The notes below the pieces were generated by a model that saw only the letters and a program-made list of their open reading frames with translations, did no database searches and was not told the DNA's origin. Shown here piece by piece: positions 2,140 through 24,200 of a DNA stretch of 26,493 bases. The stretch's first letter is position 1. Each line of letters begins with the position of its first letter. The DNA comes from Macrostomum lignano. Lineage: Eukaryota. The DNA lies in contig NIVC01005090.1 in the NCBI GenBank assembly GCA_002269645.1, positions 1-26,493 on the forward strand. Direction: 5' to 3'. A program made the position numbers and the translations under genes.

Positions 2140-2988
2140 CGGCTGTCAAGCGTGTATGTCCAGCAAATTTGTTTCTGCGTTGGCGGCGTCCGGAAATGGG
2201 AAAAGAAAGAAGCAGGCGATCGGGTATTGAGCTGAGATCCCTACGGTTAAAGTGCAAAAAAGCTTTCGGCTGACGGAACTCCGCGGTGCGCTTGTGCTGG
2301 TGAACGGAAGCCATCAACTCCGTGTATTTGAGCACCGGGGGCGAGCATGAGCTGACTACAGTCTGTCTATAGGGTTTGATTCGATCGCTACTTTTTGCAG
2401 GCCTTCAAACATATGAGCAGTGAACTATTTTGATTGAATTTGGTGCGAAAGGTAAATAAAATCTAGACAAATGACCTCAAGTGACCCTTAAGGATCAGTT
2501 AGGGGAGCGGCTTCTGGGCCGCTTGTCTCAAGCGCGCATTCACAGCAGTGCTTAATTATAATCTTAAAGAATATTGCGGCATGGCGCGAACTAAGTCAAT
2601 GATTGCAGAGGGAATGGGGCTGCAGGCTAACGAGCTCTGCCTCAAGCCCGCTATTCACAGCGGGCCTCTCAGCTGCTGCAGCAAAAGTAACACGCAGACT
2701 ATAAGGAATATCATAAGAATTAGCTTTGCTCGTACCGAGGTTGGGAAAACAATGAGTGTTGAGCAGAAATTAAAAACTCCACTTAAGCATAGAGATTAAA
2801 ATGGTGAGAGAGGTTTGCCCATTGCTGCGCTGTCTAGCTTGTCCCACAGTTTTCAGTTAAGTCACTTCAGCAGATTCGAATTCTCAGCTGCGTCCACTTT
2901 GTTCTCGGCTGTTGAGATATGCTGAAATTTGAAGTTTCGACTTAATTGTTTTTCTTTTTTTCAACAGCTTTTGGTCACGAAGGGAAAG

Positions 2989-3748
2989 GGAGCCCGCAGT
3001 TGGGGTGGCTGAGGGCAATTTCAGGGACAAGATTTAGAGCGCCTATGTACGCAGAAGGGAGCCAGCAGTTGGGGTGGGTGAGGGCAATCACAGGGACGAG
3101 ATTTAAGCCGCCAATGTACTCGGGGGAAGGAAGCCAGCAGTTGGGGTGGGTGAGGGCAATCACGGGGACGAGATTTAGACCGCCAATGTACACAGGAGAC
3201 GGGAACCAGCAGTTGGGGTGGGTGAGGGCAATCACAGGGACGAGATTTAGAGCGCCAATGTACGCGGAGGAAGGAAGCCAGCAGTTGGAGTGGGTGAGGG
3301 CAATCACAGGGACGAGATTTAAACCGCCAATGTACTCGGGGGAAGGAAGCCAGCAGTTGGGGTGGGTGAGGGAAATCACAGGGACGAGATTTAGAGCGCC
3401 AATGTACGCGGAGGAAGGAAGCCAGCAGTTGGAGTGAGTGAGGGCAATCACAGGGACGAGATTTAAACCGCCAATGTACTCGGGGGAAGGAAGCCAGCAG
3501 TTGGGGTGGGTGAGGGCAATCACGGGGACGAGATTTAGACCGCCAATGTACACAGGAGACGGGAACCAGCAGTTGGGGTGGGTTGAGGGCAATCACAGGG
3601 ACGAGATTTAGAGCGCCAATGTACGCGGAGGAAGGAAGCCAGCAGTTGGGGTGGGTGAGGGCAATCACAGGGACGAGATTTAAACCGCCAATGTACGCTC
3701 GTACTCGGGGGAAGGAAGCCAGCAGTTGGGGTGGCTGAGGGCAATCAC
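2989..3748 (+). repeat. 72-bp minisatellite, ~10.5 copies, three unit variants
   Basis: Unit GGAAGCCAGCAGTTGGGGTGGGTGAGGGCAATCACAGGGACGAGATTTAAACCGCCAATGTACTCGGGGGAA and variants, in the order A B C A B A B C A B plus a partial copy. Confidence 0.97.
3694..3703. mobile_element. Probable mariner excision footprint TA-CGCTCG-TA inside a minisatellite unit
   Basis: Three sister units read ATGTACTCGG. This unit reads ATGTACGCTCGTACTCGG, i.e. the TA is duplicated around CGCTCG. Confidence 0.75.
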
Positions 3749-3815
3749 TTAAGAGTGCACAGTTGAGATGGGAGGTAGCTGGAGTAAAAGCAAAACTTAC
3801 CCACCTGCGCAGCGA

Positions 3816-6800
3816 TCACCTGACGTGATACATGGATGTCGGGGGCAGGAAGTTGGAGCAGCTCCGCAGCAGGCGGTTGTAGTTGTCCAGAATTATATTC
3901 TCCCGATGCAGGTTGATGTCAACTTGTGGATCAAACAGATGCGAGTTGCCGTGCTGCAGTTCCCGGAACTCCTCGTACTCGTACACATTCCAATAGGGCA
4001 CGCCGCAGTTCTTCATAAGCTCCTGGCCGCCACCGCCGCCCCCGCTGCTCGCAGGAACGCCGCATGGGTTGTTTGAAGTCTGCTGCGTCTTCGGAGTCGC
4101 TGACTCGGTCTGGGTGCTCAGCTGCAGGTTCGGTGGGGGGAGGCGGTGTTGCAGAGCAGCTAAGAGTATTGTGGAGTGTACTGATAAACAGTCCAAGTGT
4201 CTTGACTACACAGCCAGCAGTACTTTGAGCTGCCCAGTCTCATTCATCATCACTGAGAGACTCACCTGCGCGTTGCTGGCTGACCAGCAGCCGGGCAGCG
4301 GGTGGCGCTTGTTGGACTGGTTGCTGCAGGACAGCGGCACCAGCAAGGCCGACAGTGACAGCGGCTGCGCTGGCTGCTTCAGCTGACCGCGGCTGCCGCG
4401 GCTCCGCCTTGATTGGCTGCGGGCCGCAGCCCCTGTCAGGCGAGCGGCATTTTAGGGTGCGCGATTTTGAATTTGTGTCCATGAAAGAGTTGTGCGTACA
4501 TTTCTACTACGAGCGTATTAGTAGATAAACAAATATTTGCAGTAGGTTTTGAGCACCTCCTTGCACTGACTCCTGCTGACAAGGATAATTTACACAGGCA
4601 CGTACTTATTACACAGGCTTACTCAAGGTGTACAGCGGCTTTCTAATTGTCAGGCATGTTGTACTCTGCCTGTGTCTCGGGGGTTGGCCCGAATTTGCTG
4701 GAATCGCACGACAAACCTCGGCGGCCAACTTTTGTGCACACGTCCCAAATGAAGTTCAGGCAAGCAACACGGGAAAAGCATAAAGTAGTTGAGCCAAAAT
4801 TATTCTTATAAAAACCTAAGGTTGGCATGCAGACTTTCTGTGTCTTAAGCGCTGCTTCATGAGGAGGGAAAGCGAGTTGATGACGCGCGTCTTTTTTTGA
4901 CGAATGTACCTGTTTGAAAAGTTCGAGAATTCTATAACTTCCACGAGGTGGCCGCTTGTGAAGCTTCTGGTGAAGAAAGTCTGGAAGCCTCAGAACAGAC
5001 GATTCTAAAAATAAACATTTGACCCGATTATATTTTGGTTTCATCGTGTTTCTTGTCCCCTCTCTTCATTTCTCCGATTTTGCAGCACCCCAAGCGCAGA
5101 ATCGCTCTTCCTTACCTGAAGCAAACTCGACCCGCCTCCCGCCGCCGCCCCCGCCGGCGCCGTCAGTCCCAGCTGTGCGCTCCGAGCGCGCGGCAAAGTG
5201 CGAACTGCGCTGGTCCTTCTCACTGGCCGGCTGCGAGGTGAGATGTGAGGGGGGTGAGAGTGAGGGTTGCGATGTGAGGGGCGTGGGTGTAGGATGAGGT
5301 GCGCGGGGTGAGGGTTGCAGGGTGAGGGGTGAGAGAGGGCGGGGTGAGGGTGCGGTTGAGAGAGGGCGGGTGAGGGTGCGGAGTGAGGGGTGCGGGGAGG
5401 GGGCGGGGTGAGGAGTGAGGGGTGCAGAGTGAGGGGTGCGGAGTGAGGGGTGCAGAGTGAGGGGTGCGGAGTGAGGGGTGCAGAGTGAGGGGTGCAGAGT
5501 GAAGAGTGCGGAGTGAGGGGTGCGGCGTGAGGGGTGCAGAGTGAGAGGTGCAGAGTGAGGGGTGCGGCGTGAGGGGTGCAGAGTGAGAGGTGCAGAGTGA
5601 GGGGTGCGGAGTGAGGGGTGCGGATTGAGGGGTGCAGAGTGAGGGGTGCGGAGTGAGGGGTGCGGAGTGAGGGGTGCAGAGTGAGGGGTGCGGAGTGAGG
5701 GGTGCGGAGTGAGGGGTGCGGAGTGAGGGGTCCGGTTGCTACCCAACCTCCAGTTCCCGAGTCGCTACCCCAACCCCAATCTCCAAAGCCGCTAGCCCAA
5801 CCCCAATCTCCAAAGCCGCTAGCCCAACCCCAATCTCCAAAGCCGCTAGCCCAACCCCAATCTCCAAAGCCGCTAGCCCAACCCCAATCTTTAAATCCGC
5901 TAGCCCAACCCCAATCTCCAAAGCCGCTAGCCCAACCCCAATCTCCAAAGCCGCTAGCCCATCTCTCATCCTCCCAGAGTCGCACCAGCTGGCTGTCTCC
6001 GCAGTAGTCCTGCAGGTGGAGGTCCGTGGCGTTGCAGTTTCTCTGTACGCTCGGCCCGCTGAGGCAGAAGCGGGACTGGGAAGCCAGCGGACAGGCGAAG
6101 GCGGGCTGCATGTTGGGCTGCTGCTGACTGAGGAGCTTGCTGACTGCGGTGAGGAGATCGGCCTTTGGAGAGCAGGGCTTGCGGCTGAGACTGAAATAAT
6201 CTTAAAGACTTTTGAGGAATGAGACTCAGAGTATGAGGCATGAGAATCAGAGTGTGTGAGGCATCAGAATCAGAGTGTGAAGCATGAGAAGCAGAGAGTG
6301 TGAGGGATAAGAGAGTGTGAGGCATGAGAATCAGAGAGTGTGAGGCATGAGAATCGGAGAGTGTGAGGCATGAGAATCGGAGAGTGTGAGGCATGAGAAT
6401 CAGAGAGTGTGAGGGAAATGAGAGTGTGAGGCATGAGAATCAGAGAGTGTGAGGCATGAGAATCGGAGAGTGTGAGGCATGAGAATCGGAGAGTGTGAGG
6501 CATGAGAATCAGAGAGTATGAGGCATGAGAATCAGAGAGTATGAGGCATGAGAATCAGAAGCAGTTAAACATGAGAATCCGAGTTACAGATAGGCATGTA
6601 TGAGAATCGGAGAGTGAGACATGAGAACATCTGTGTTACAGATGAGACTGTGGGGCAGCGACTGAGATGTGAGCCAGTAAGGTGGTGCAAAAATCAATTA
6701 TAAAATACCGAATTTCGGCAAAAACAGCAGCGACGATGACTCACACACTTCAGATGCCGAATGCTGATCCTCAAAGTGAGCTCCCGCGGGCAAATTCTCA

Positions 6801-6913
6801 ATTCTCAGTGCAGTTTGACAAGCGGTTGCCATGGGGGCGGGGGTCCCAATATGAAAGACGAAGGGGCAGTCATGCACTGCAGCCATTGGTCTATGGCCCG
6901 GCCTGGCAGCCAT
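3816..6913 (-). CDS. Spliced hypothetical protein (~404 aa) with WG/GW repeats. Exon model: 6913-6745, 6200-5743, 5230-5116, 4432-4266, 4121-3816
   Basis: All four junctions are GT-AG with matching phases (1, 0, 1, 0), and the summed length of 1215 nt is a multiple of 3. Donors GTGAGT (6744), GTAAGG (5115) and GTGAGT (4265) are strong. The donor at 5742 (GTAGCA) and the start codon are weak. No family recognised. Confidence 0.5.
4508..4517. mobile_element. Probable mariner excision footprint TACGAGCGTA (intronic)
   Basis: Exact match to the recurring 10-mer. Removing CGAGCGTA leaves the palindrome TCTACTA-T-TAGTAGA. Confidence 0.6.
5250..5730 (+). repeat. 14-bp G-rich minisatellite GAGGGGTGC(G/A)GAGT, degenerate at its left end
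   Basis: Seen directly. It fills predicted intron 5742-5231, and the GGGG runs give G-quadruplex potential. Confidence 0.95.
5764..5960 (-). repeat. 27-bp repeat, ~7 copies, encoding WGWASGFGD on the minus strand
   Basis: Plus-strand unit GCTAGCCCAACCCCAATCTCCAAAGCC, in frame with the upstream non-repetitive ORF 6111-5961. Confidence 0.9.
6231..6625 (+). repeat. 23-bp purine-rich minisatellite GAGGCATGAGAATC(A/G)GAGAGTGT
   Basis: Seen directly. It lies in predicted intron 6744-6201. Confidence 0.95.
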
Positions 6914-6994
6914 GCAGATCAGAGGCTTCCCTCCATCATATAATATAGTAGAGAAAAGCAGCCGAGTGCAGACGGTATGAAATCAACCCAGTGC

Positions 6995-7042
6995 CAGGGA
7001 CTGCTAAATACTACGAGCGTATGTAGTATTTAGTAGTCCCTG
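6995..7042. other. 20-bp inverted repeat (hairpin) with the footprint TACGAGCGTA (7012-7021) at its apex
   Basis: CAGGGACTGCTAAATACTAC ... GTAGTATTTAGTAGTCCCTG, one mismatch. Confidence 0.85.
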
Positions 7043-7136
7043 CCCACTGCCTTCGCCGGGAAAATCACAGAGGAAAATGCAAATCCAGTTTGAACGGGAG
7101 CCTTGAAATCTGACCGCCAGCAAATCGAATTTGGTT

Positions 7137-8215
7137 ACGGTTTAGGTTAGGATTTAGGTTAGGGTTTTCGGTTAGGACTTAGGTTTGTTTTTTTGGTTAC
7201 TTAGGTTTGGGTTTTAGGTTAGAATTTAGGATAGGTTTTAGGTTAGACTTATGTATGAATTTTAGGCTAGGATTTAGGTTAGGTTAGGATTATGGTTAGG
7301 ATATAGGTTAGGGTTTTAGGTTAGGATTTAGGTTAGCGTTTTAGGTTAGGATTTAGGTTAGGGTTTTTGGTTAGGATTTAGGTTAGCGTTTTAGGTTAGG
7401 ATTTAGGTTAGGGTTTTTGGTTAGGATTTAGGTTAGGGTTTTAGGTTAGGATTTAGGTTAGGGTTTTAGGTTAGGATTTAGGTTAGGGTTTTAGGTTAGG
7501 ATTTAGGTTAGGGTTTTAGGTTAGGATTTAGGTTAGGGTTTTTGGTTAGGATTTAGGTTAGGGTTTTTGGTTAGGATTTAGGTTAGGGTTTTTGGTTAGG
7601 ATTTAGGTTAGGGTTTTAGGTTAGGATTTAGCTTTGGGTTTTTGGTTAGGATTTAGGTTAGGCTTTTTGGTTAGGATTTAGGTTAGGGTTTAAGGTTAGG
7701 ATTTAGGTTAGGGTTTTTGGTTAGGATTTAGGTTAGGGTTTTAGGTTAGGATTTAGGTTAGGGTTTATGGTTAGGATTTAGGTTAGGGTTTTTGGTTAGG
7801 ATTTAGGTTAGGGTTTTTGGTTAGGATTTAGGTTAGGGTTTTAGGTTAGGATTTAGGTTAGGGTTTTAGGTTAGGATTTAGCTTTGGGTTTTTGGTTAGG
7901 ATTTAGGTTAGGCTTTTTGGTTAGGATTTAGGTTAGGGTTTAAGGTTAGGATTTAGGTTAGGGTTTTTGGTTAGGATTTAGGTTAGGGTTTTAGGTTAGG
8001 ATTTAGGTTAGGGTTTATGGTTAGGATTTAGGTTAGGGTTTTTGGTTAGGATTTAGGTTAGGGTTTTTGGTTAGGATTTAGGTTAGGGTTTTAGGTTAGG
8101 ATTTAGGTTAGGGTTTTAGGTTAGGATTTAGCTTTGGTTTTTTGGTTAGGATTTAGGTTAGGCTTTTTGGTTAGGATTTAGGTTAGGGTTTAAGGTTAGG
8201 ATTTAGGTTAGGGTT
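7137..8215 (+). repeat. Interstitial telomere-like satellite: 25-bp unit GGTTAGGATTTAGGTTAGGGTTTT(A/T) with a 250-bp higher-order repeat
   Basis: Diagnostic variants recur every 250 bp: GCTTTGG at 7631/7881/8131, TAAGG at 7691/7941/8191, GGGTTTATGG at 7761/8011. Confidence 0.97.
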
Positions 8216-8971
8216 TGAGTTGACAGTCAATGTGTGGCAGTCAAATGTCGCGGACCTGTCAGCTGAGACGAGAACACTCGCTATCAAAAAGTGCATCTGA
8301 CAGATTCTGTAACCCTGCTGTCAGCTCATATAGAAATTTGCATTTTACCTAAATTAAAGCTGACAGATGTGCAACTATGGACAGCTGAAGTGGAAGGATG
8401 CACTCTTGATTTTCTTCGAAAACTTCCGAAAACTCAAGCTGTACATTCAAAGCGGCCTACTAGAATTCTGCCAATATTTGCAAGTGTAACGTCCTGTGTT
8501 GTTAAGTAGTCCTTGGCCTGGAACACGCGTGAGTTCACAGGCGAAGTCCTGGCAATGACCAGCTGACAGCCAGTGGAGCTCGTCACGGGTCGCTTTTGAG
8601 CGCGCATGCAGAGGCCGGCACCCGATTGACATGCCGGCAAACAACTGGAAACAGAAGATCCAAGCCATTGCTCTGCAGGCCATGCAGCCGCAGCAGGCGC
8701 TCTGAGCACTGAGATGGAATTTTGTATTTTAAAGTCGTCCTTTAGTGCCCCCGTTCAGTCTTACAAATAAATGAGCAGTGTTGGGGATTACTTCATTGGT
8801 AAACTAAATACGTGTATGAGCATTTTGGTAGGCAGGTAAGCTAAGTGGGTGACTGCAAGCCCTACTGTCTGTAAAACTCAGCATTGCACGGACTGAGCTG
8901 GAGTTGGTTCAAGATGGGCGAGAAAGCTTCAGTCTCTCGAGGGCTTCAGCAAGCCCTGCAGGCAGCAGTCT

Positions 8972-9856
8972 CTACATCATGTGCGTATCACCGTCTGAGC
9001 CGTCAGCAGAGGCGGCGCCAGCGTTCTCGGAGTCGCTGCTGCTGCCCACGCGGTCAGAGAAAGAGATGCCGTCGTCAGAATAGTCGTCGTCGTGATGGTT
9101 GTTCAGCTGGTAGCCGTTGTCGCCAGCCGGAGGAAAATCGTGTCCGAGCTTTCGGCCAGCGGCTGAAGAGCCCGGCGTTGCGCGCCTCGCGTCGAACGGA
9201 CCGCCGCGAAGTCGCTGCGGCTGCTGCCTCGCCGGGAAGCTCCTGGCGGGAGCGCCGCCGGGAAACTGCAGACTGAACTCCGCGTCCTCCGCCTCTACCG
9301 AGTTGCCGCCGCGGTCCTGCCGCACGCTGGGGCGCACAACCAGCGAGCCGTTCTCGGCGATCCAGGAATCGAGCTGCAGGACGAGTCGCAGCTCGCTCGG
9401 CTCCGTGACGACACGCCGCCCACTGCCCGCCAGGTTGCTGGCGTTGGTGGCCACCGGCTGCGGCTCAAGCGAGCGCTGAAGCGTCTGAAGCTTTTCCCGC
9501 TTTTGCTGCGGCTGCTGCTGCTGTTGCTGTTGTTCCTGCTGCTGCTGCGGCGGCTGCTGAAGCTGCTGGCAGTTCTTCATGTACATTGCAATCTGGTTGA
9601 AGAGCTGCTGCACTTCCTGCTGATGCTGCTGCTGCTGCTGCTGCTCGTGCTTGTGGTGTCTTTCCGCTTTTTGTGTTTTCCTCTTTCGCTGTTGCTGCTG
9701 CCCGCCAGCCTTGCCGCTGGCTGCTCCCGCTGTCACCGCAGGTGCGGGGCTGGGCTCTTGCTCTTTTATCTTGTTAATGACCTTCTCGAACTGCGCTGCC
9801 AGCTGAGCAGCCGTTTGAAAGAGCTGCTGCTCCGTGCTGTCGCCGCTTTCTGCCAT
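8972..9856 (-). CDS. Hypothetical Gln-rich, largely low-complexity protein (294 aa), single coding exon
   Basis: Intact GC-rich ORF with polyQ tracts, a basic RKRK patch and an acidic tail. A 3' splice acceptor TTTTATTCTAG lies 15 nt upstream of the ATG. Confidence 0.7.
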   Translation of the reverse strand: MAESGDSTEQQLFQTAAQLAAQFEKVINKIKEQEPSPAPAVTAGAASGKAGGQQQQRKRKTQKAERHHKHEQQQQQQHQQEVQQLFNQIAMYMKNCQQLQQPPQQQQEQQQQQQQPQQKREKLQTLQRSLEPQPVATNASNLAGSGRRVVTEPSELRLVLQLDSWIAENGSLVVRPSVRQDRGGNSVEAEDAEFSLQFPGGAPARSFPARQQPQRLRGGPFDARRATPGSSAAGRKLGHDFPPAGDNGYQLNNHHDDDYSDDGISFSDRVGSSSDSENAGAASADGSDGDTHMM

Positions 9857-11617
9857 CGTTCTGCTTGACCACTAGAATAAAATCAGCTGGCTTGCTGCGC
9901 GCATTTCTAAAGACTGATATTCTGCTTTTGGGCTTTTGGTCGGCAGCGCCTCGTGACCCTGTTTGACGCTTTTAGGCCATAGACGCGCGTTTCGATGAAT
10001 CGAATTTCTAATATAAAGTTGCATGCAATGATGGAGTTTAGCCAGTCCTTCCGTTTTCAATAGGTGCACGGTGTTCGGATGCTAAACGCTCTAGGAGATT
10101 ACATATCAAGATGAGTCGACAGACACTCAGAGTCTCTGCATTCGACACACATGGTATCAGTAAATTTTGTTTCCCAGCTGCCACCGGTTCAAAGTACTTA
10201 CTGGGGAAGTCACGGTTCTGTGAGATCAGTTCTCTGTTCTCATCAGTATAGCAAGAATTAAGTTTCTTCACGTAGAAACTTAAAACTTTTCTGTCACACA
10301 AACGTCACCAGCGTCTTTTAACACAACGGCAAATATATACATATGTTTGTATAAAATACATTGTATATTACTTAATGTACGAAGTCCAGAGTAGGGTCGA
10401 TTCAGTCCGGTAGAGATTCAAACGTACAGAAAGAAACAGAGGAACGTAGAAAGGAAGATAGAAGCTCGGCACTGTGTGAGACGGAACGCGTTGGCAAAAC
10501 AAATTCTGTTTCTGTTAGAGTTGGTTTTCTTAGTATTTTATTACTGCACAGAATCCACACAGAAGGCTGACGGACTGGCTCGAACAGAAGGTTGAAGCGT
10601 TGAAGCTACGAGCAGTTCAAGAATGCAGAACTCCGTCGCGACTCCAGCTGACCATGCCACAGCATCCGAGCCGCACTGCTCACAGCCGGTGCAGGAGGCG
10701 CTGCTGCTGACGCTGCAGGCTCCCCACCGACAAGGACAGGCGCGCTCTCCAGGGATGCTGTTCTCCAGCTATTTAAGGCCCCACCAACAGAGCATTTTCG
10801 CCGTAAATTTTTCCACGCCGTTAAACAATAGAATAAAAATAGAAGCCGACAGCGGATGGATGTGCATGCAAATACACGCTTTTCAAAACTGCCTTCAGCA
10901 AAATGGCAGTCACTCTCTTCATCCCTCCTACAGTTGCCATAATTCAGGCGACTGGCAACTGTGGCCCAGTTGTGCGATCCGATAAAGAACCGGATCGATC
11001 GGCCGCCGCTGCCATTTAAGTTAAAATGGAATCCTCATCTTCCCATTCATCCCTTCTGTAGAAGCTGTTTGGAGGAGGATCAATAAGGGTTTTCTCTTCT
11101 TTTTTAGGGTCTGAGCAGCATGCTTTAGCGTTGTTTTTGTTGTTTGTTGTCTTTTCGCTTAATATTACAACCTCTTTAATGGTTGAATGATGTCCTCAAT
11201 ACACAAACATGCTGGTAAGTATCGGTAGAGCCTATTGTTTTTCAGTTTATTCACGATGCGCGTCAAGTTATATTTTTTAAATAAAATTTCACAAAATAAA
11301 TTCCTTTGAAAGTTACAAATGTTAAAAATTAAATTCTTCCCAATCAATCAACATTACGCGGTAAGTTGGTCCAGTTATAACACTTCACAACAGAGAAAAT
11401 TAAAACAAAATGAGTAAAAAAGCATCCAGGCTGTAAGCCCATCTGAGTCATCAAAATTACAGGCAATGTCAAAAACAAAAAAAACTTCAGACAAATTATT
11501 TCAACCCTAAAATATCCCGGGTGCCAGAAAAATCTTGAGGCTCATGTCGACTTGTTAAGGCTTTATTGAGTATTGAAGTATTGAACCTGTTGAGTATATC
11601 CCGCTAATAGCCAGTTA

Positions 11618-12374
11618 CGAGGCCAAAAAGTATCGAGAATTGCTGTCTAACTCTGAAAATACGAGCTTTTACTAAAATTAATCGATGTCTTCTTGCAGCT
11701 CAGCTTCTCAGCTTTTATAGGAAGCAGTCTTGTGTCGGAGAGTTTTGGTTTTAATGATTTTTTAATGATTTTTCTAAATAGCTGTCATACTGCTATGAGT
11801 ATGTCACAAAATGAACAATGAGCAACTAATCAACATCAATTTTCCGGTGAAACTCGGCAAGAAGCTATCGGAATGCCTCCAGCTGCTTCACGAGGTGTAT
11901 AGAGAAGATGCTAAGTCTCAGGCAAGGGTGTATTAGTGGCACAAGCGATTCCAGGATGGATAGGAGAGCGTCAAAGATGGGGCCAAAGTTCCTCACTGAC
12001 GGTCAGAAAAAACTGCAATTAAACATCGAGACATTGAGACAGTTTTTGGCCAAAAGATAGGTCGCAGAGTTGAGCCACCCACCTTATTCACCAGATATAG
12101 CGCTGTGTGATTCCTGGCTCTTTAACAAGGTGAAGCAGGTCCTCAAAGGATCCAGATTTCAAAACTAGGATGCCATCAAGGAGAGTGTGACAAGGGTGCT
12201 GAGGGGCGTCATGAAGGAGGGCTTCCAGGGCTGCATCAGGAGCTGGCACTAGCGATTGAGGCGATGGGTTGAAAGTGGCCGCAATTAATTTGAAGGCTGT
12301 AGTTGACTAAATTTGCATAATTTGTTCTGAAATTTTTTGTAGCTAAATTCTCGTTCCATTTTGGCCGGACCTCA
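11618..12374 (+). mobile_element. Internally deleted, decayed mariner element (irritans/Hsmar2-like CGAGG termini), ~757 bp
   Basis: Left end TA|CGAGG-CCAAAAAGTATCGAGAATT. The right TIR reverse-complements to TGAGGTCCGGCCAAAATGGAACGAGAATT. Transposase remnants: MNNEQLININFPVKLGKK...ARVY*WHKRFQDG*ESVKD (HTH, 11811-11980), PKFLTDGQK (linker) and LSHPPYSPDIALCDSWLF (YSPDL motif). Confidence 0.93.
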
Positions 12375-12693
12375 TGCATCTCAGATTGACCGTAAATCTC
12401 TTCATAAGTAACTAGCACATGACTTATCTATTTCACAGAAACCCCGAATGCAAGCTTGTTAACTTCCAAAAAACTATACCTACGACTAAAACCCAATTTT
12501 AAAAAGCAATGTAAGTGCTTACTAATACCCCAGGTAAAAACATAATGGAAGTCTTAAAAAACACTAATAAACGTATTGTACCGAAAAAACAACCACATCC
12601 ACCACCGAAAAAAACTTGACAAACGGGTCTAGGACAGTTAACCGAAAAACATTGAACGACCTTATACTCAATAGAAAAAGGGCCTCAACGAAA

Positions 12694-15600
12694 TTAACCG
12701 AAGTAGCCGTCTTTAGTTGACTCGGCCTGTCGTTTCTCGTCCGACTGCGCGAGCTCGACACTGGCGCCAGCTTGTCCAAGACCGAGCTTGGCGCTAGATT
12801 CTTGCTTACTCGAGCGCTCTTTGCTGTCGCCGTCTTTAGTTGACTCGGCCTGTCGTTGCTCGTCCGACTGCGCGAGCTCGACACTGGCGCCAGCTTGTCC
12901 AAGACCGAGCTTGGCGCTAGATTCTTGCTTACTCGAGCGCTCTTTGCTGTCGCCGTCTTTAGTTGACTCGGCCTGTCGTTTCTCGTCCGACTGCGCGAGC
13001 TCGACACTGGCGCCAGCTTGTCCAAGACCGAGCTTGGCGCTAGATTCTTGCTTACTCGAGCGCTCTTTGCTGTCGCCGTCTTTAGTTGACTCGGCCTGTC
13101 GTTTCTCGTCCGACTGCGCGAGCTCGACACTGGCGCCAGCTTGTCCAAGACCGAGCTTGGCGCTAGATTCTTGCTTACTCGAGCGCTCTTTGCTGTCGCC
13201 GTCTTTAGTTGACTCGGCCTGTCGTTTCTCGTCCGACTGCGCGAGCTCGACACTGGTGCCAGCTTGTTCGAATTGGAGTCCTGCGCTTACGCATTTTCTT
13301 TCAGTTTTATTGTGATTTGGGTTTTTGTGTGTAGTTTGATTTTCTGTTTTAAAGGCAAAACTGGTTTTTGATTCGTCCTTAGATAGGTGTATTCCTTGTC
13401 TTGAGGTGGACTTTCTTTTTGTTAGAGCTCCTTCTTTGGTTTCTTTTTCCTTTTTGTATATCCCGATTTGCTTGGTTTGTTCGCCTCCGCCGGCCTCGAC
13501 TTCGTATTGTCCGTGGCCTAGGGTTAACGCAACTTCTTGTTCATTGGTTCTTGCTGCTATTTTATGTTTTCCCTTTTTTACTTTGGCTTCCGTTCCTATG
13601 GATCCGTGCGTGATGCCTAATTGAGTGTCGTTGCGTTGTACCGATAAACTGAAGTCATCATCTGTTGTTTTAACTTTTAGCTGATCCTGCTTTTTTTTAA
13701 TCTGATGCCATCTCCAGACAACTCCACTTTGGTGTCCTTTGATGCGTTAGGCTTCCTCGGTTTTTTTCCTTGCTGTGTGTATTTTTTTGGCATGGAGGAA
13801 TGATTCATATTGTTTTGCTTATTAGCAGTTGATAATGTTTTCGAGAGAGTTCTCTTGGCTTGATCTACGGCTTGGCTTGTCATGTCTCCTATGCTCTTTC
13901 TTAAATAATCCTCTAGTATAGCACTGACTACTTCGCTGGTTTGCGACCGCATTTGCTGCCCGACTTTGCTTGTCAGTTGGCTGAGTTGCTCCACATTTTT
14001 CATATTCTTTTCCTTTAGCTTGAGATTAGGGTCGTACTTGATTTCCCAATCGTCGCTTCCGTCAATTAAAAAACAATCTATATTTTTTACAATGCTGCCA
14101 ACGACAGTTCTCAAGTTCTCAGCCTGCACTCCGATGGCTGCAGCATCCACCGCTACGGCTGCCAGCCTGAGGAAAACTAGGAGCCCTTTAAAGTGTTCTG
14201 CTAATTCAGAGTTTAAATTGCTCAGATATGACTTTATTGTATCCATGACCTTTTCCATCGCTTCTGCATCGTTCAGAACTTTGTGTGCTGCCTCTTCCGT
14301 GGCTTCTTTAAGTGCCTTCAATACATTGATTTGCAGTTCCGGAGTAAGCATGGAGAAATCTAATACATTCATTTTTTCCGTCGCTTGATTTTTCTGCACG
14401 CACATGGGAGCTGCTATTCGAACAACAATGTCGTACAGCCTTCCTCGCTGGGCTTCTTCGTTGCACTTTCCCTCGATATCAATTTCAACATTCTTCTTTA
14501 ACTTAGAAATTAAACTGTCAATGAGCCGTCTTTGAGCATCAGTTACAGCAAAGTCTGCTAAAAACTTAAACACGGGATTGTCTACTATACCTTTGAGCAC
14601 TTTTACAGTATTTTCTCCAACCAACTTTGTGACCAAAGATCCAGCTTTGGAATAATGTTTACTTCCAACTGAACTCATATTTTTCGCCACCGCTCCGAAC
14701 TTTGTCGATGATTTTAAGTACCCAATAACTTTACTAAAGCCGAAAGTAAGTAGGGATAAGCCAATGTTTAGAGCCTTGCTTTTCAACCAAGACGTAGAAT
14801 CAAATTCTCCTTTAAGTAAACCCATGGTACCGGCCAATATGTCACTGAAGCCTTCAAAGACTAAGTTTACACCACCAAAAGAAAACATGCAGCCAATGGC
14901 GATCTCGATTAAACCTAAAATTATTACCGCGATCGCGAATCGATACTGGGGTTTTTTCATCACACTGAATAGCCTCACGTGACCCAATAAGTAGAGAGAC
15001 CTCAGCTCATCAAGTGTAATTCTGTCTGGGTCTTTCTCGATGTCCTTTATACAAGTGCTAATAGCGACGATTTGGCCATCTTTTAATTCTTCAAGTTTTT
15101 TTAACTTTGTTCGATTCCAGCTTTGTACTTTAGGATAATATCAATCCTAGTAGTACATTGGCCGGATAGTGCACTTTTATCAGACTTTTTATCCAATTTG
15201 AATGCTTGATCGGATGTAACCTCTTGATCAGCCTGATCCACTTGATCTGTTTGATCGGATGTAACCTCTTGATCAGCTTGATCCACTTGATCTGTTTGAT
15301 CCGATGTAACCTCTTGATCAGCTTGATCCACTTGATCAGCTTGATCCACTTGATCTGTTTCATCCGCTTTTAATCTTGCTCCAGAAAAAAACCGAGTCCA
15401 CAAGGAGTGGGCTAGCCACGTTTCCTTAATTCTTGTTTTGGCTTCCTGCAAGTCGTTTTTGACATCTTCAATGCCGCTATCACCTTTCATTATCTTCGCA
15501 TACGCTCTATTGTAGTAGGCTATTGAAGACCAGGCGCAATTCATTGCAATAGCTTTAGTATATAAATCAATTGCTTTTTGGAAATCCTCATGTCGTAAAT

Positions 15601-18600
15601 ATTTGTCCGCAAGTTTTAGAGTTTGAAACGGACTCATTAAACAATCTGATTCAATATTTTTTGTGGCGTCCTTGAAAGTTTCCTTGACTTCTCTAACATA
15701 CTTGTCTGTGTTTGGTTTGCTGAAGTCGGCAGTGTGGCACAAAATTGTCTTTAGATGCATTCCCCAGATTTCTTTCAGACAGTTCAATTTGAGCTTTAGG
15801 TCTATATCATCCTTATTTGCCTGGCGGTACTTCGTTAATGAGCGACTGAAGCGACGAAACAGGCTTTCCTCGAATTCTACTTCAGGCATAGAAAATTCCG
15901 TATGATTTCGCAGCTCTTGTAAACTGGCCTCCTGCCTCACTTGCTTCATCTCCTCTACCGAGTCGCAGTCAGCAAAACAAGCGCTAAGACCCTCCTGGCT
16001 TAGAATCAATGTTGCAGAACCCCGCTGACCCTTGCGTCCACTGCGACCACACACTTGCTCCTCGACTCGCTGATTCAAGGGGAGAAATGTGACAAGTACG
16101 TGCAGACCTCCAGCTGCCTCTGCTTCATCGTTTACTTTCACGTCCGTGCCTCTGCCTGCCAAATTCGTGGCCACAATCACATCTCCTGGACCAACAATCA
16201 GCTCAGACTTTGTATCTTCGTTCCTGATGTACCTTTTAGGCGTAACCCCGTGACATCGGCGAGTTACCTCGTTGAGAACGAGATCAGCACTGTTTATGTC
16301 CTCACAAACAATCAGAGTTGGCCGGTGCCTTTCCTTCTTTACTAGCTGGCAAAGCTTTGAGATGCACTCAGATTTGGTTTCGGTGACAATGCCCGGGTTC
16401 TCTACTAGCCGGCGTTCCCTGAACGGAGGAATATAGTTTAGCTGTACTTTGTAGGTTTTGCGCATGAACTCCTTCTCGTGCTCCTCCCCGAGAGTCCCAG
16501 AAACGCCGAACACCGCGGTGCCATACCGACGGAAAAAAGATAAATTTGATAAAAAGTTTGTCTCTAAACCAAGAGGTCTCATTTGTAGACGATGCTTCAG
16601 CTGCAGGAACTGCTGCAGTCCATCGCTCCATCTCATGTTTTCTTGAACCACACCTGTGTGCTTGAAGTCCACAGGCACAGCATCTCCGTCCTGCAAGAGG
16701 TAGTCGCGTCCAGGCTGCAGAACTCCTGCGGTGAGAGCACTGTTGATCCAGACGTCAAGCATATCGTCGATGAACCCTTTCAGGTGTTTTGGCATCGGCA
16801 GTTGCTTTTCCTTGCTAGTTACTTCCGTTTTAGAGTCGTCAGTTGAATCCTTTAAGGATGTGCTGTAATTAATTTGGGATTGAACATCCTCTCTTTTTTT
16901 CGAAATGAAGTCCTCAATATTGGCGAACAGCAATCTGCAGACACCGCCTTGGTTCACGAGAAGATGCGTGGAACAGTCTTCTGAATGCTCCAGTGGTTCT
17001 ATTTCCGCATTTCTGTAGGTGTAGATGTTGCACTGGGAAACTGGAGCAAGGAATCTGCGGCAGTGGTTAGAATTTCTCTTACTCTGCCGATATCGAATTG
17101 AGATAAATCAACGGGATCTACAGTCTGATTCAAGAAGTCCTTCTTTTCCTCTGAGTTTATCAGTTCTTTCTGAAGTAGCGTTTCAATTAACTCATTGAAT
17201 TCCTCATCGGACGTTAGTTCTTTAAGGAAGTAGAGAAATGTCATTGCCTGCTCTGCAGCCATTTCACCTCCATGCACGGTGTTTAGAACATGACAACCGA
17301 ATGTGGCTCTGAAAATCGTCGGAAAAACTGGGTCCAGCATTTTCATGTCTCCCACATCCTGAGAAAGATACGTTAGCTGCACTCCCTGGTCGAGCAGCAG
17401 TGAATCGACCTCATCCACAATAACTGCGTCGAAGCTTCTTGTGCCACGAATTTCCTTAAACTGGAACTCGTGCCGCAAAACGTCACCTGCAAATGAAGAC
17501 ACCGTGCCATACACTATTTTGGACTCATAACACTCTTTTGGTTTTTTATGATTAATGTTGCAGCTAACGGTAACTTTGCATTCTTTATAAAAATCATGCC
17601 ATTCTTGGCAGTCTCTTTCAGCCAGAACTTCAGAGGGTGCAACGACGTCAACTGACGTCCTCCCGAGAAGCAGAAGTCCGACGGCGGTCATTGCCACAAT
17701 GCACGATTTTCCTTCGCCAGTCAGAATCTGCAAAATTTGTCCGAATTTCTTGCTAGCAGAGCTTTTGAGCAAGGCAGCAGCACTGAGAAGCTGTGTGTTC
17801 CTCGGAAGATATCCTTTACATTTTCTCACTGCCTTTGACAGATCAATCAAAATTTTGTGCAATGGTGGTTCCTTTCCACGCTCCCATAGTTTGATTTTGC
17901 TAAGCTTTTCGGCGATAGTTTTTTTGCTTTGCCAAATCCGGACAAATCAAAATATTTCGCGGTTTTACTGACGACATCTTCAAGCTTGAAAAGCTGATCC
18001 TCTTCAAATCCTCCTGATTCCTTAAGTTCAGCTAGAAGTTCGCCGAGAGTCCTCTGTGCTGCCTGATCCTTTTCAAGTCGCTCAATGGTGGCCTTTGAAA
18101 TAGTCTCGCTGGAATCCAGAAGACCTTTTAAATCGCAGCGGCTCAAAATCATCATCTGGACGACCTGTCTTACTTGATCAGGTGTCGAGTCACTAGAGTG
18201 AATGAGCTCCATTAGCTTGAGCGTGCTTGCAGAATCCCAGTGCTGCATTGACAGAATGAGCTCAACCACACATTCGGTGTCCGATTTCTTATCCAGATAG
18301 TCAGCGATGCCAGCAGTTTTCAGCATTGCTGTCACGACGGATCGAAGTCTCTTCAAGTCGGTGTCTGCTTTCTGGACAGGCCAGAGTCGAGTAATATCTT
18401 CAGCCACTAAGAGTAGCTTCAGCAGAATTTTTATGACAGGATTAGTCTCATCCTGATTGTTTGCCATTAGCAGCTTATCCAGATGTTGTATGGCACAATT
18501 TGTGTCACGGAACTGATGAAGAAGTTCATCCAACTCGTCTTCGTTCAAAAGGTCTTCAGCGGATTTTTCTTTAAAAAAAAGCAAAACCAGCAAGCCATAA

Positions 18601-20161
18601 TACACCATGTCGATTTCTGTTTTCGGAAAGCAAAATTCTATGAGAACCTTGTTTGCAGCGTCTAGCACTTGGCCAGCCGACTCTTCATCTAGAAGCTTAA
18701 GAAGCGACAAGTGTGTCGCCATTTGATTCTCTTTATTGGGCTGAGGAATTCGTGACTTCCAATGACTACGAAAATGATTCAGGAATTGCGATCTTGAAAC
18801 GGCTTCTACAGTTCTCAAAGCATTTTGACCACTCGCATTCTGACTTGCTTCTTTGAGACGGGTAAAAACATCTCCGACAGCATATTCAATGCTTTTATCT
18901 ATTTGGCTCCTGATATCTGCAACAGTAGCATCGGAAACTCCAAGGCTTGCATAGTCTTTTGCACACTTGCCGCGCACATGCTGTATCGAGACTCTCAAGC
19001 CTTTGAACAATCTCTGCATTTCTTTTGCTCTATGGTTTTCCCTTGCTGTTGCCACTTGCCGTCCAAATTTCTCTGTTTTCTGTAGGTTCTCAGACGCTTG
19101 CTGATTTCTCCTTATCTTTGCTCGCTGCTCTTCAATTCTTCTGGCGATATCGGCCTCCTTTCAGCTAGTTCAGCTTCGAACTCTCTTCTTCCTTTTTCAA
19201 GCTCCTCCTGCTGCGACTGCAGTCTCTTCTTCATCTCCAAGCTATGCTCTTCCATCTCAATCTGCTTCTTCTGCATCTCGCTCTGAAAGCGACCTTTCCT
19301 TTCTTTAAACTGCGCTTGCAGACGAGCTCTGTGTTGATCAGCTTCCGCATTGAGGCTGTTAAACCTTGCACTTGTCTCTGACGTAATCCGCTCCTTTTGG
19401 TGCCGAAAGCTTTCCAGTCTTTCCATTCGAATCTTTTCCACCTCTTTTTTTTCCTCCAGAAAATCCTGTTGGCCTTTAGTTTTCCAGTCTGTCTTTTGCT
19501 TCTGCAGTTGAGAGAAAAGCTTTTCTCGATTCTTATTCTGCTGGGAAGAACTCTCAGCCTGCCTGCCTAACCTGTCTTTTTGCATCTCCTGGCACCTTCT
19601 TTTGAACTTATCTTCTCTGCGGCTGAATGCGTTTAATGCCCTGCTTCTTTCTGAATTCCACGCCTCCCATTTTTTTCTGTTTTCTTCTAGGATCCTATCC
19701 TGCTGATCCTTCTGCTCTTTTATCTTTCTTTCGTCAAAGAGTGTCCGTTCTCTGTCACTCTGCTTCAGCTGCTCTCGAGCTGTTTGCATTCTTTGCTCCC
19801 GCTCTCTGCGTTTCCTGTCAGCAAACATAGACTTCGTTTCATATTTATATTCTGCCTCCTGTTTGCCGTCATAGCTCAGATGAATAAATCCCTCTGCCGG
19901 TGAATCCAGCTTCCATTCTTTGTTTCTGATCCCATTGCACCAAGACTGCATGTTTGGGTTTTGAATGGTCTCGTGTTTACCGTGCATTCCGTGTTTGAAG
20001 TAAATGTTAACCGGTAGACCTTCGTAGTCATAATGAACTGATCTACCAGATGGCAAATTGATGAGCTCGGATCCAGCACCAACTCCTATCACCTTGTACT
20101 TCGCTGCCACGCTCCAGTCCTCTTCTGTGTCGTTACAGAGCTTGCTCCCGGTGTTGCCCAT
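12694..20161 (-). CDS. Giant eukaryotic SecA-like DEAD ATPase (~2490 aa after repairing five 1-nt homopolymer deletions). Parts: myristoylation motif, coiled coil, SecA NBD1/NBD2, TPR, hydrophobic hairpin, C-terminal repeats
   Basis: SecA-family motifs appear in order: QILTGEGKS (Walker A), APSEVLAERD, YGTVSSFAGDVLR, VIVDEVDSLLLD (Walker B), WSDGLQQFLQLKH, GVSGTLG, IVATNLAGRGTD, GGLHVL...EEQVCGRSGRKGQRGS. Frames join at ~19155, 17919-25, 17035-37, 15106-08 and 13691-98. Stop TAA at 12696-12694. Confidence 0.85.
12707..13264 (-). repeat. 123-bp coding tandem repeat (41 aa, QAGASVELAQSDEKRQAESTKDGDSKERSSKQESSAKLGLG), ~4.5 copies
   Basis: Units start at 12707, 12830, 12953, 13076 and 13199 and are nearly identical. 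They are in frame with the repaired SecA-like C-terminus. Confidence 0.93.
15206..15360 (-). repeat. 45-bp coding repeat (DQTDQVDQADQEVTS) built from 9-bp DQx subunits
   Basis: About 3 copies, seen in both DNA and translation, between the TPR and the hydrophobic segment. Confidence 0.9.
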
Positions 20162-20258
20162 GCTGCAAAGTTAATGCAGTTGTTATTAAATTGAAGCAAA
20201 TCAAAAAACGCACGGACACTAAAAGCAGCAAAAAATGGAGAATGTATGTTCCACGTTC

Positions 20259-20270
20259 TACGAGCTCGTA
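20259..20270. mobile_element. Probable 4+4 mariner footprint TA-CGAG-CTCG-TA
   Basis: The first four bases of both mariner ends are juxtaposed between two TA, in non-coding DNA upstream of the SecA-like ATG. Confidence 0.6.
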
Positions 20271-20829
20271 CCTCGTTAACGAGAAGTTTGCTTCCACACC
20301 CTGATTGCTGCCCACATTCGCTACTGGAGAAGGGTAAGCCATCGATAGCAGGCGCTTTGGTCTGGAGCTGACCTTCGAGCTTCATTCTAGAGCCAGTTCA
20401 TTCTAGCTTACGAAAATCCTTATTTTATCCTTTTTATCCAATGGGACCCCAAGGAAGGGACTTTGGTGGGAAGTCTCGACACTAACTGGTTTAATTCTAG
20501 TCAACTGGTCTGACAAGTTATCAATTGCAGTAGTTTGTTTGAATCCCCGCATTGAAACTTAATGTATAAAAAATGTAGTTTTTTTGTAAGCAATAAAATC
20601 ACAGTGACCAACAGCCTATGAGCTATTAGTATGCAGTCAAATTCCATATTGGAGCTTCAGTTATAAATTCAAATCACATTCGAGTACATTATATGCTTGC
20701 ACAAAGCAATAACGTTTCTTTCTTACCTTTGGGCATGTGACGTGTATAGCAACCAGGATCAAGATTTTTAAGCAGTGATTAAACGAGAATTTTTTTATAA
20801 TGTTTTATATTTATAAATGTCTTACTTAC

Positions 20830-21245
20830 CAGTCCACTTTATCTCATATTTGCGATGGTGCAAGAATTAGTACCTTGTAGAAGGTAACTGCAAGAAACAA
20901 ACAGCATGGGTTAGAAATTTAGCGCACTGTAAGTACGCAATTATAGTGTAATACACTGCAAAATGTACGCAGAAATGGCCCGCCTCCTCGGGTCCATGAG
21001 CACACAAAACTGAACTTCTCTTTCTGTTGAACAGTACGAGCGTAGACCGACTGCAGGTACAGATGAAACTTTCTCACCTTTTAAGAAAGGATAATTTTTT
21101 CGTATAGTGAATTTGCATGCACTCTGCCTCTTAGCTGAGCCACAATAAGTGAAGTTGTCTAGATTCCTAGAACCTCCTTCCCTAACAGGTGCATGAATCT
21201 ACTGTCAGATAAGATTTTCTGACATATTTTTCTCTAAAACTTCAA
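20830..21245. promoter_or_regulatory. Putative bidirectional promoter / spliced 5' UTR region of the divergent gene pair
   Basis: Minus strand: small exon 20887-20830 (TTGTTTCTTGCAG acceptor, GTAAGT donor) and an acceptor 1 nt before ATG 20161. Plus strand: donor CAG|GTACAG at 21057 and acceptor CCCTAACAG at 21188. No start site can be located directly. Confidence 0.35.
21035..21044. mobile_element. Probable mariner excision footprint TACGAGCGTA
   Basis: Exact match to the recurring 10-mer, non-coding. Confidence 0.6.
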
Positions 21246-24200
21246 ATGAACGACGACAGGCACGACTTAAAGCACCATTTTCGCTTTCTAGTCAAAAACA
21301 AAAGATCCACAAGGCAGAATGGAAGCCTGGAAAGTGTGCTCGTCTTTGATTTGGAAGGACCTCCTTCTTTTTCGTCCAGTAGATGGACAGAAGCGAGCAA
21401 GAAGCAAAAGACAAACCACGCGGAAGTCGAAAAATGGTTTGTCAAGTTTAGGAGGAGCCATGAGGAGGTAAGACCACTTTTGAAGAGATTTTGATTTACA
21501 TCATTTTCAAATTCAAGGTGCCGCCTGTACTTTAGGTCAAAAGCTCACTGTAATCAGCAAGCTCACTAGATGCAGAACAATAATTTTAGTCAATTATTTT
21601 TCTGAAATCTATAGCACACATACATACAGACAACTCATTTTTTGTATATAGGATCCTGTGATGCCAGTCGGCTTATTCATACCTTTCCTTAAAGCTTGAG
21701 GCTAGAGGCTAGCTAGCCTAGATGCATAAGGCTTGTATTGTACGAGCGTACTTTACTCTCTCGTGTTGCACTGGCGCAATTGGTGGTGGTTCGCGTTGCA
21801 AATCGTCCTGAACAAGTGCAAGCAGTGTATAGCAGGCTCCTAGCTGCAGGCCGGTCCAAGGACAGCGGGGGAGGCAAGAGTCGCTCATTCCTCATCTTAT
21901 TAATGAAAAAACGAATTATCTTCCATTTTTTCTCCATTAAGGTTCCAAGTGAATTTTCAAACAAAACTACTGAGGAACAGTTAGGTGCGACTCAAGTGCA
22001 ATACGGTGGCCAGACATGCTTTTTGGTCTATTGTCTACACACGTCATTCCTCTCTTCCCGGGAAATAGGAGTTTATGCGCCATTTTTTAGTTCTCGGCTC
22101 ACGGTGCGCCGTTGCAAATGAAGAGTCCTTAGCTATCCATACTAGAAAGTATCTGTACCAAGAATATGTTTTCGTTCCCTGCCATCTTCCACCTTCACCA
22201 AAATAGACATGAGATCGCGCTAGATGGCTTGAGTAACCAAATACTGAGATGCGATTCTATCATTCTCAAACCGCTGTGAGCGGACAATAAGTTAGTTTGG
22301 GACTACTTCGAACAGTGAGCAGTTTTCTCTTTGCTTGCGATTCTCCTGATCGCCCTGTGTGCTGCAATTCCGCCGAGCGTTTCAACTTGCATTGTTTTAT
22401 AGAACGGGCGCTCTATAGCTCCCAGTATATGATAAGATGACGCGGTTGTGTTCAATCAAAATTCGTCAATGCAGACCTTGAGTTCTTTGTGTTTTTTACT
22501 CCCCATACCCACTCGCTCCAGATCAGATCTACACGTGGGATGTAGAAGAAGGGTGTTTGATTTGCGTTTTAGTTTGTAAACAGTGAGTTCGTGCTGCATT
22601 TAACCGTCTCTCTATACCCTTGTAGATTAATGTGTAGTGCGTATGCTGTGTCATCTCAATTCAGAATCGTCCTATTTCCTTTGCTACTCCTTTCAGAGGA
22701 AGGAACAATGGAGCTGCAATGTCGAAGTAAATAAAAAAAGAAGAGAAGTGTCTTTGGCAGTATTAGGCATGACAATCTCGGATAATATCAAAATTAGTTC
22801 GACAAAGATCACGGTGGCCGACTGCAAGCAGGAATTTAACCGATTGGTCTTGGAGTCCACAAAGGGAATTAATATCTCATCTAGATGCATGCGAGGGTCC
22901 AAAATAAAACTTCTTTCTTCAGAAGTTGTGGTGGCAGAAAGCTCAGTTGTTCAGTGCTCGCAGTTGCTATGCGAATCAACGATCCGGGAGGTGTCATCCA
23001 GCCTGATTGTGTTTGGCAGCATCTTGCCGCTTCCCTGTTCAACTGAGGAAGCTGATGGCAGCCTTTCCATTCGAGTTAATGGAAATATTGTAGTAAAAAT
23101 GGATGCAAAAATCGGATATTCGGACCGGCATAAAAAGGCCAAAGAAGTAAGTTTGATCAGTACTGATGGCATAACAAATGTTGGAGTCGTATTTGCTGAA
23201 CACAAGATAGAAATCTCGGCAAAGCAGATTCGCTCTCCAGTATCGAGCAAGGAGTCTGCAGCTCGTGTGTCAAGATACCTCAGTGACGCTGGCAAGCAAA
23301 GCAAGGCTGAAAGGAAAGCGAGAGACGCCGACAAGCAACTGATCGATTCGTCCACAGGTGATTCTGCAGCAGTGAAAAAGCTGCTATTTTCTGGGGCTGA
23401 TCCTACATTCAAAGACAAAAAAGGTGAAAGCGCCATTGCGAAGCTCAGAAAGGCGATTGCTGATCTGGGAACTGCGCCGAATCCACCGGGTGTCGCTGAA
23501 AAGAATAAACTCAATAGGAACGCGATACTCCTGAAGTGGGAGGCAAAAAGTAAGGGAAAATACCAGTCACAGAGTATCTGCTGTCTTGTTAGTGAGGATG
23601 TTGCCAACCTCAGCCAGTTTCTGGGTGCAAAAGTTCATCTTGAAATTGGTGGGGATGCGTTTGTCGAAGAAAGGTCTGTATGGAAAAGTGGGTCAATCAG
23701 CGGTTGGTGCCGCGGTAGGCTCAATGTCCAAGGAGAAGTCAAGATAGAAGAGCTGAATAAATTCGAGGTTGGAAAATGCAGAGTCCAAGCAGGGGCAGAA
23801 TTGTGGTTAGTGAATGGCGGTTCATTAAGAGTAGTAGGTAGTCTTGAAAACATTGGATGCATATACAACAGCTTCAAGAAGTTCTCAATGGATATTGAAA
23901 GTTTCTCACAGAGTATAAATGCGGCTGCTTATTCTGAGAAGGAGAACAAAGCTGAGCTTCAAATTACCACAAGGAGACCAAGTGAGTCCGTGTTTGGCAG
24001 GCTGGGTGGCTACCGAGTCACTGTCTGCGCATTTGCTCAGCTTGCGCTTCAGGCTGAAGTTGAGGCCATGGAGTCTTTGGTAGGTGTCATTTATAGTCCA
24101 GCTGGTCATATTTCGCTGCAAGGAAGTATTAAAATAATTGAAGGACCACTTGTTGTACATTCCTGGCTTCGAACCTGTGGCTTTGGACCTGACGTAGAGT

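Follow-up and report, generated by a model that had tools for sequence, protein, structure and literature searches.

What process leaves the same ten nucleotides, bounded on either side by TA, at dispersed positions along a single contig? The question is raised by a 26,493-nt stretch of the Macrostomum lignano contig NIVC01005090.1 (hereafter the window, meaning the whole stretch that was analysed), which was singled out because the motif was seen there. The word TA-CGAGCG-TA (TACGAGCGTA) is present in five copies when both strands are counted, and a longer word (TACGAGCTCGTA) that differs by an internal 2-nt insertion is present once. It is very probable that both words, in all six places, are scars left at donor sites by the excision of an element belonging to the Tc1/mariner superfamily. 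Excision scars are a known kind of feature, but their form in this window (TA, six nucleotides, TA), their uniformity, their freshness and their local density are unusual. Such footprints are textbook knowledge and have mostly been met singly in experiments; here there are six of them, undecayed and near-uniform, within 26 kb.

A recurrent word at TA sites

In dinucleotide-preserving shuffles the expected number of copies of TACGAGCGTA on either strand is 0.01, and the observed count of five was reached in none of 100 shuffles and in none of 300 from a second shuffle set. When corrected for the approximately 525,000 possible 10-mers, the probability that any 10-mer attains five copies in 26.5 kb is ~1.4e-3. 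The single 12-mer has an expectation of 0.000 in the shuffles. Among the dispersed TA-N6-TA words of the window, recurrence is confined to TACGAGCGTA. One copy is located on the minus strand at 3694-3703, where the plus strand reads TACGCTCGTA, and four are on the plus strand at 4508-4517, 7012-7021, 21035-21044 and 21741-21750. The 12-mer, TA-CGAGCTCG-TA, is located at 20259-20270 and is a perfect palindrome over its 12 nt, with 4 nt for each element end. All six sites carry TA on both sides of the insert (TA-N6/8-TA).

The initial annotation had listed a third word, TACTCGTA (3976-3983), alongside these two. Our recount and shuffles returned the same counts and coordinates for all three, but the 8-mer carries no weight alone as evidence for footprints. 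Its single occurrence is not significant, the expectation being 0.13-0.26 and a count of one being reached in 20-24% of shuffles (0.23 and P=0.20 for the listed site). The sequence at 3976 reads CTCGTA-CTCGTA, and a 6-bp tandem duplication is an equally good account of this doubtful member as a 4-nt scar of the heteroduplex type. Neither Pfam nor PDB gave an identity for the open reading frame (ORF) around it.

Alignment of the six significant sites with 40 nt of flanking sequence revealed TACGAGC as the sole invariant stretch. The flanks are unrelated to one another and contain no mariner-like sequence beside any of the scars. The motifs are thus bare, rather than pieces of a longer repeat or of a miniature inverted-repeat transposable element.

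The state of a site before insertion can be read at 3694, which lies in one unit of a 72-bp tandem array (2982-3748, 10.6 copies) whose sister units serve as paralogous empty sites. Sister units of the same subtype, at 3085, 3301 and 3445, read CCGCCAATG-TA-CTCGGGGGAAGG with a single TA, whereas the 3694 unit reads CCGCCAATG-TA-CGCTCG-TA-CTCGGGGGAAGG; the core is AATG-TA-CTCGGGG in the former and AATG-TA-CGCTCG-TA-CTCGGGG in the latter. Relative to its paralogues the 3694 unit has therefore gained 8 bp, namely an additional TA and six nucleotides that the sister units lack, as is characteristic of a target-site duplication of TA accompanied by nucleotides from an element end.

Two of the other sites have palindromic surroundings. 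At 4508 the inferred empty form (region 4499-4530) is a short palindrome, TCTACTA-T-TAGTAGA, and the 7012 scar is positioned 1-2 nt off the centre of a 40-bp near-perfect palindrome. A core, TACTA…TAGTA, is common to both, and palindromic or bendable TA targets may be preferred. The palindromic context of the 7012 scar extends over 48 bp (6995-7042) and has 20-nt arms (CAGGGACTGCTAAATACTAC and GTAGTATTTAGTAGTCCCTG) that are 95% complementary and unique within the window. It is bounded by direct repeats, CCCAGTGC (6987-6994) and CCCACTGC (7043-7050), which are identical at 7/8 positions. In itself this structure looks like a hAT-type mini-element of which only the two terminal inverted repeats (TIRs) are left, with a CAGGG… TIR and an 8-bp target-site duplication; alternatively, the inverted repeat just continues outward via CAGTG/CACTG. 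The scars at 21035 and 21741 share an intergenic region between two divergent genes.

The scars were probably produced by a cut-and-paste element of the Tc1/mariner superfamily whose ends read 5'-CGAG...CTCG-3'. It would have inserted at TA and duplicated the dinucleotide; at its later excision a staggered cut would have left the flanking DNA with 3' overhangs of element nucleotides, and end joining by the host would have sealed the break to give TA, six (or eight) element-derived nucleotides and TA. The net gain per scar would be 8 (or 10) bp.

Overhang length and candidate source elements

The products that shorter staggers would give at CGAG ends are absent from the window. For a 2-nt stagger, neither TACGTA (1.7 expected) nor TACGCGTA occurs, and for a 3-nt stagger neither TACGATA (0.93 expected) nor TACGATCGTA is present. 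Enriched products are limited to the 4+2 form, in five copies, and the 4+4 form, in one. The scars therefore require that four or more nucleotides of one end were retained, and we infer an overhang of at least 4 nt. The initial annotation had proposed an overhang of 4 nt as a fit to all forms. Its minimum stands on the absence of 2- and 3-nt products, but the figure is a lower bound, since a value of exactly 4 needs a CGAGG-ended source.

Enumeration of all registers of two identical 3' overhangs distinguishes the candidate termini. If the source were a CGAGG-ended mariner, the overhang would be 4 nt and the dominant 4+2 product would form unpaired: with these ends the 10-mer and the 12-mer arise only from registers without any base pair, and the lone register in which both 3' ends are paired gives TA-CGAG-TA. 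With CGAGC ends, as in a Minos-type source, a 5-nt overhang would provide both observed products, as there are just two registers that pair both 3' termini and these yield TA-CGAGCG-TA and TA-CGAGCTCG-TA. For CGAGCG ends and a 6-nt overhang, the 10-mer is the full-overlap product, with 4/6 positions paired. By this enumeration CGAGC ends with a 5-nt overhang explain both enriched forms better than a 4-nt overhang does. If the scar density of the window holds genome-wide, the scar sequence would limit the possible cleavage geometry of CGAG-ended mariners and Minos-like Tc1 elements to a stagger of at least 4 nt, possibly 5-6 nt; for these elements there are, to our knowledge, little or no biochemical data.

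A mariner beginning TA|CGAG, as the initial annotation had pointed out, does exist within the window. It is an internally deleted, decayed relic of 757 bp on the plus strand (11618-12374), with a left junction TTA|CGAGGCCAAAAAGTATCGAGAATT (TTA|CGAGGCC) and a right end decayed to …GGCCGGACCTCA|TG. The N-terminus of its conceptual translation matches HTH_48 of Mos1-type transposase (E=1e-4, slightly under the gathering score), and PF17906 and PF01359 are found in its closest relatives. When the stitched relic peptide was used as a search query, four matches were obtained, on contigs of other genomes. The relic is 84-86% identical to intact relatives, and its own inverted terminal repeats (ITRs) are ~81% identical to each other, with indels.

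A related, internally deleted mariner of 714 bp is located at 9721-10434 of L001, a 363-kb GC-poor (34%) eukaryotic contig of the ENA metagenome assembly ERZ25067582. This element has perfect 34-nt TIRs and a TA duplication, which indicate that it is young. Both ends are perfect TA|CGAGGTGTGTCCGAAAAGTAACGAGA, or TA|CGAGGTGTGTCCGAAAAGTAACGAGACTGG over a longer stretch, so that the family as a whole is characterised by CGAGG termini and by duplication of TA. The scar insert CGAG/CTCG corresponds to the terminus of the window relic, with the family ends confirmed by the L001 copy. A mariner N-terminal protein, P0122, is encoded identically in contigs L003 and L004 from two ENA metagenome samples (ERZ23498364 and ERZ27279858). 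The first 120 nt of these contigs are identical, and their mariner copies are ~86% identical to the window relic. One host or contaminant animal, perhaps related to the source species, is presumably present in both samples.

No further transposase relics were found when 104 non-genic stop-to-stop ORFs in the window were scanned against Pfam, and no Minos-like element or relic was detected there. The source may be either a CGAGG-ended mariner or an unseen CGAGC-ended (Minos-type) family; the repair logic mildly favours a source other than the mariner family of the window.

Age, density and rival explanations

The scars show little sign of age. No 1-mismatch variant of the 10-mer is found in the window beside the five perfect copies (0.64 expected by chance), and at 10% decay the probability that 5/5 copies would be intact is ~0.02. 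The CpG observed/expected ratio of the window is 0.78; CpG decay is modest yet present. Five undecayed scars set against a relic that is ~15% decayed imply that the scars are younger than the relic copy, which is therefore not their source, and they may derive from another family altogether. Their youth relative to the relic implies recent, frequent transposition in this region.

All six significant scars lie outside the large ORFs (~10 kb), in agreement with the earlier remark that frameshifting forms avoid long reading frames. With random choice among the TA dinucleotides of the window, 792/1238 of which are non-coding, this placement has P ~0.07, which is compatible with, but no proof of, selection against insertions of 8 and 10 bp. 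The 20259 scar is 98 nt upstream of an ATG at 20161, inside a 98-aa ORF that is probably spurious. Three of the six scars are found in the 2.4-kb spacer of the two divergent genes, which holds 155 of the 792 non-coding TAs; clustering or local hopping was considered and rejected as not significant (P ~0.09).

As control DNA we used the outcome of a metagenome scan with P0121, which returned 57 distant loci at 30-57% identity. Neither the 10-mer nor the 12-mer occurs in a total of 299 kb of eukaryotic DNA from other sources in which related mariners are present, the 20 kb around the young L001 copy included, which argues that the word is not a general motif. Exact matches to the two words in the searchable literature are unrelated oligonucleotides only, for example an HA-tag linker, and this scar sequence is unreported there.

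It could be argued that the scars result from the ordinary 3-nt stagger of a mariner with asymmetric termini (left CGA…, right …GCG). The 10-mer does divide as 3+3 (TA-CGA-GCG-TA) and, as in Mos1, the ITRs of mariners may differ at their terminal positions. Furthermore, 2-3 nt is the general rule for the Tc1/mariner group (PMC2170065, PMC3878927). However, the CGAG-ended elements that we encountered are symmetric, the L001 ends being perfect and the right end of the relic being a decayed CCTCG; asymmetric 3-nt ends cannot yield the 12-mer, which is not expected by chance, and the 3+3 product of symmetric ends is the TACGATCGTA that is absent from the window. We consider this origin highly improbable. 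An even smaller chance is given to a cis-regulatory or protein-binding motif that selection holds intact and that is concentrated in intergenic DNA. Such a motif would be in keeping with five perfect copies devoid of 1-mismatch variants, with the location of every copy outside the large ORFs and with the presence of half of the sites in the divergent-gene spacer. Yet at 3694 one tandem unit alone has an insertion of 8 bp that includes a duplicated TA, which is not how binding sites arise by point mutation, and the word consists of TA, transposon termini and TA. In addition it occurs in both orientations despite being non-palindromic, the 12-mer departs from it by an internal insertion of 2 nt, degenerate variants are lacking, the clustering is not significant and the word is missing from the 299 kb of control DNA from other animals.

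A mutational process unconnected with transposons, or an unrecognised micro-repeat (for example templated insertion, slippage or gene conversion from a common donor), that yields CGAGCGTA insertions at TA, with a coincidental likeness to transposon ends, ranks lower still. Tandem duplication can explain the 8-mer at 3976, and the flank at 3694 (…TA|CTCGGGG) resembles the insert. What this process leaves unexplained is the identical 8-bp insertion within five unrelated flanks, in none of which does the insert copy its own flank, and the exact match to CGAG termini with TA on both sides and no longer shared sequence. Least credible of all is an artefact of assembly, polishing or library preparation placed at TA sites. 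Nothing specific speaks for it, as it is suggested solely by the perfect identity of the copies, and we know of no adapter or linker that the scar word matches. The word occurs in both orientations at sites of unique sequence, and it matches the genome's own transposon termini. Abortive gap repair by synthesis-dependent strand annealing was also rejected; it should give scars of varying length with junctional microhomology, neither of which is seen.

Several observations weigh against donor-site excision. The single-TA empty state is available for only 1/6 sites (3694, through the paralogous tandem units), and the comparison is limited to that site. No alleles or orthologues of the scar sites were found, an exact look-up of a 349-aa ORF of the window being empty and the best match of a 618-aa SecA-like ORF having 35% identity, and no element-occupied site was seen. 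The window contains no intact or young CGAG-ended element. In the 20 kb around the young L001 copy there are no scars, which shows that scars are not an automatic companion of the mariner family. Under the mariner model the dominant 4+2 scar is without a pairing rationale, and TA-CGAG-TA, the product analogous to that of Minos, is not enriched in the window. Finally, five perfect copies without degenerate variants could also be a sign of selection on the word.

A bolder version of the excision account is possible but doubtful. It envisages a recently or still hyperactive Tc1/mariner element that makes its 5' cut 5-6 nt inside the end, deeper than any characterised member, and that leaves a stereotyped, heteroduplex-derived 6-nt scar about once per 3 kb of non-coding DNA genome-wide. 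If this were true, transposon scars would be a major, countable indel class of the species, and a naturally active transposase would be at hand as a potential tool. The proposal in the initial annotation of roughly one footprint per 4-5 kb and massive scarring of the genome is an overstated extrapolation from one window that was chosen for the motif. Should the density alone hold genome-wide, the species hosts, or lately hosted, an exceptionally active cut-and-paste element, and a count of scar words would gauge past transposition independently of surviving copies. If the density is merely local, the scars are a neat yet ordinary trace of transposon traffic.

Neighbouring features and comparison with known systems

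The genes on either side of the spacer are divergently oriented. On the minus strand, five serial long ORFs (349, 402, 287, 618 and 436 aa; 13677-20161) form one intron-poor gene for an animal 'SecA-like' protein with SecA_DEAD, SecA P-loop, SecA_PP_bind, Helicase_C and TPR domains. The N-terminal sequence of this protein, MGNTGSK, resembles a myristoylation signal. The best match (35% identity) is in Mytilus coruscus, and other matches are found in sea cucumber, many fishes and Daphnia. On the plus strand, consecutive long ORFs of 748, 244 and 305 aa (22637-26481), which together exceed 1,200 aa and match no Pfam family, represent a large gene transcribed divergently from the SecA-like gene. 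Scans of the window with Rfam and for tRNAs found nothing.

The density of minisatellites in the window is exceptional, and several arrays leave both strands open as spurious long ORFs. A 25-nt unit, ATTTAGGTTAGGGTTTTAGGTTAGG, with TTAGG/TTAGGG telomere-like motifs in an interstitial position, is repeated in a 1.1-kb array at 7129-8216 and again at 1995-2130; GC skew reaches 0.76 across 7001-8000. Six further arrays, with periods of 18, 72, 14, 27, 23 and 123 nt, are located at 14-499, 2982-3748, 5245-5735, 5763-5987, 6213-6559 and 12706-13267.

Among characterised transposons, Mos1, Sleeping Beauty, Frog Prince and Hsmar1 cut with a 3-nt stagger and Tc1, Tc3 and ISY100 with a 2-nt stagger (PMC3878927, PMC2170065). 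Their canonical footprints resemble the scars in having a duplicated TA around overhang-derived nucleotides after non-homologous end joining. In contrast, they retain only 2-3 element nucleotides, and the CGAG equivalents of such footprints are absent in the window. Natural genomic scars comprising a small duplication and short end-derived sequence are described for the plant mariner-like Stowaway/Osmar elements (PMC4561436), although these are plant elements with other termini. We found no account in the literature of one stereotyped scar that turns up again and again at kilobase intervals.

With respect to its termini, the mariner family of the window is close to human Hsmar2. The reconstructed Hsmar2 has the ITR TA|CGAGGGGTCTTCAAAAAGTT, beginning TA|CGAGGGG, and its excision products are exclusively non-canonical and variable (PMC3770610), so that no canonical scar is known for this group. 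The Hsmar2-type ITR is common to the window relic (CGAGG..CCAAAAAGT) and the L001 element (CGAGGTGTGTCCGAAAAGT), and TA duplication and Mos1-type domains are likewise shared. The fifth base of such an ITR is G, however, and the observed scars would be possible only from 4-nt overhangs joined unpaired.

A closer parallel for the scars themselves is provided by Minos, a Tc1-family element of Drosophila hydei. Arcà et al. (1997) reportedly described the Minos footprint as 4 terminal nt plus TA and explained it by 3' overhangs of 4 nt that join as a heteroduplex. Minos ends in TA|CGAGCCCC, as seen with the inverted-repeat primer TACGAGCCCCAACCAC (PMC3680223), and a 'characteristic six bp footprint' remains after its excision (PMC3386967, PMC10992017). 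Given this precedent, with its TA|CGAG terminus and 6-bp scar, retention of 4 nt is less novel than the initial annotation had implied by listing footprints of 3 nt and of 2 nt as what is established. Minos resembles the presumed source in its insertion at TA, in its first four, arguably five, terminal nucleotides and in a footprint longer than the 2-3 nt rule allows. The terminus thus matches the Minos-type 4-nt heteroduplex footprint, but the form of the scar differs: in Drosophila the scar is TA-CGAG-TA or TA-CTCG-TA, a net gain of 6 bp, whereas the dominant scar of the window has six element nucleotides and a net gain of 8 bp.

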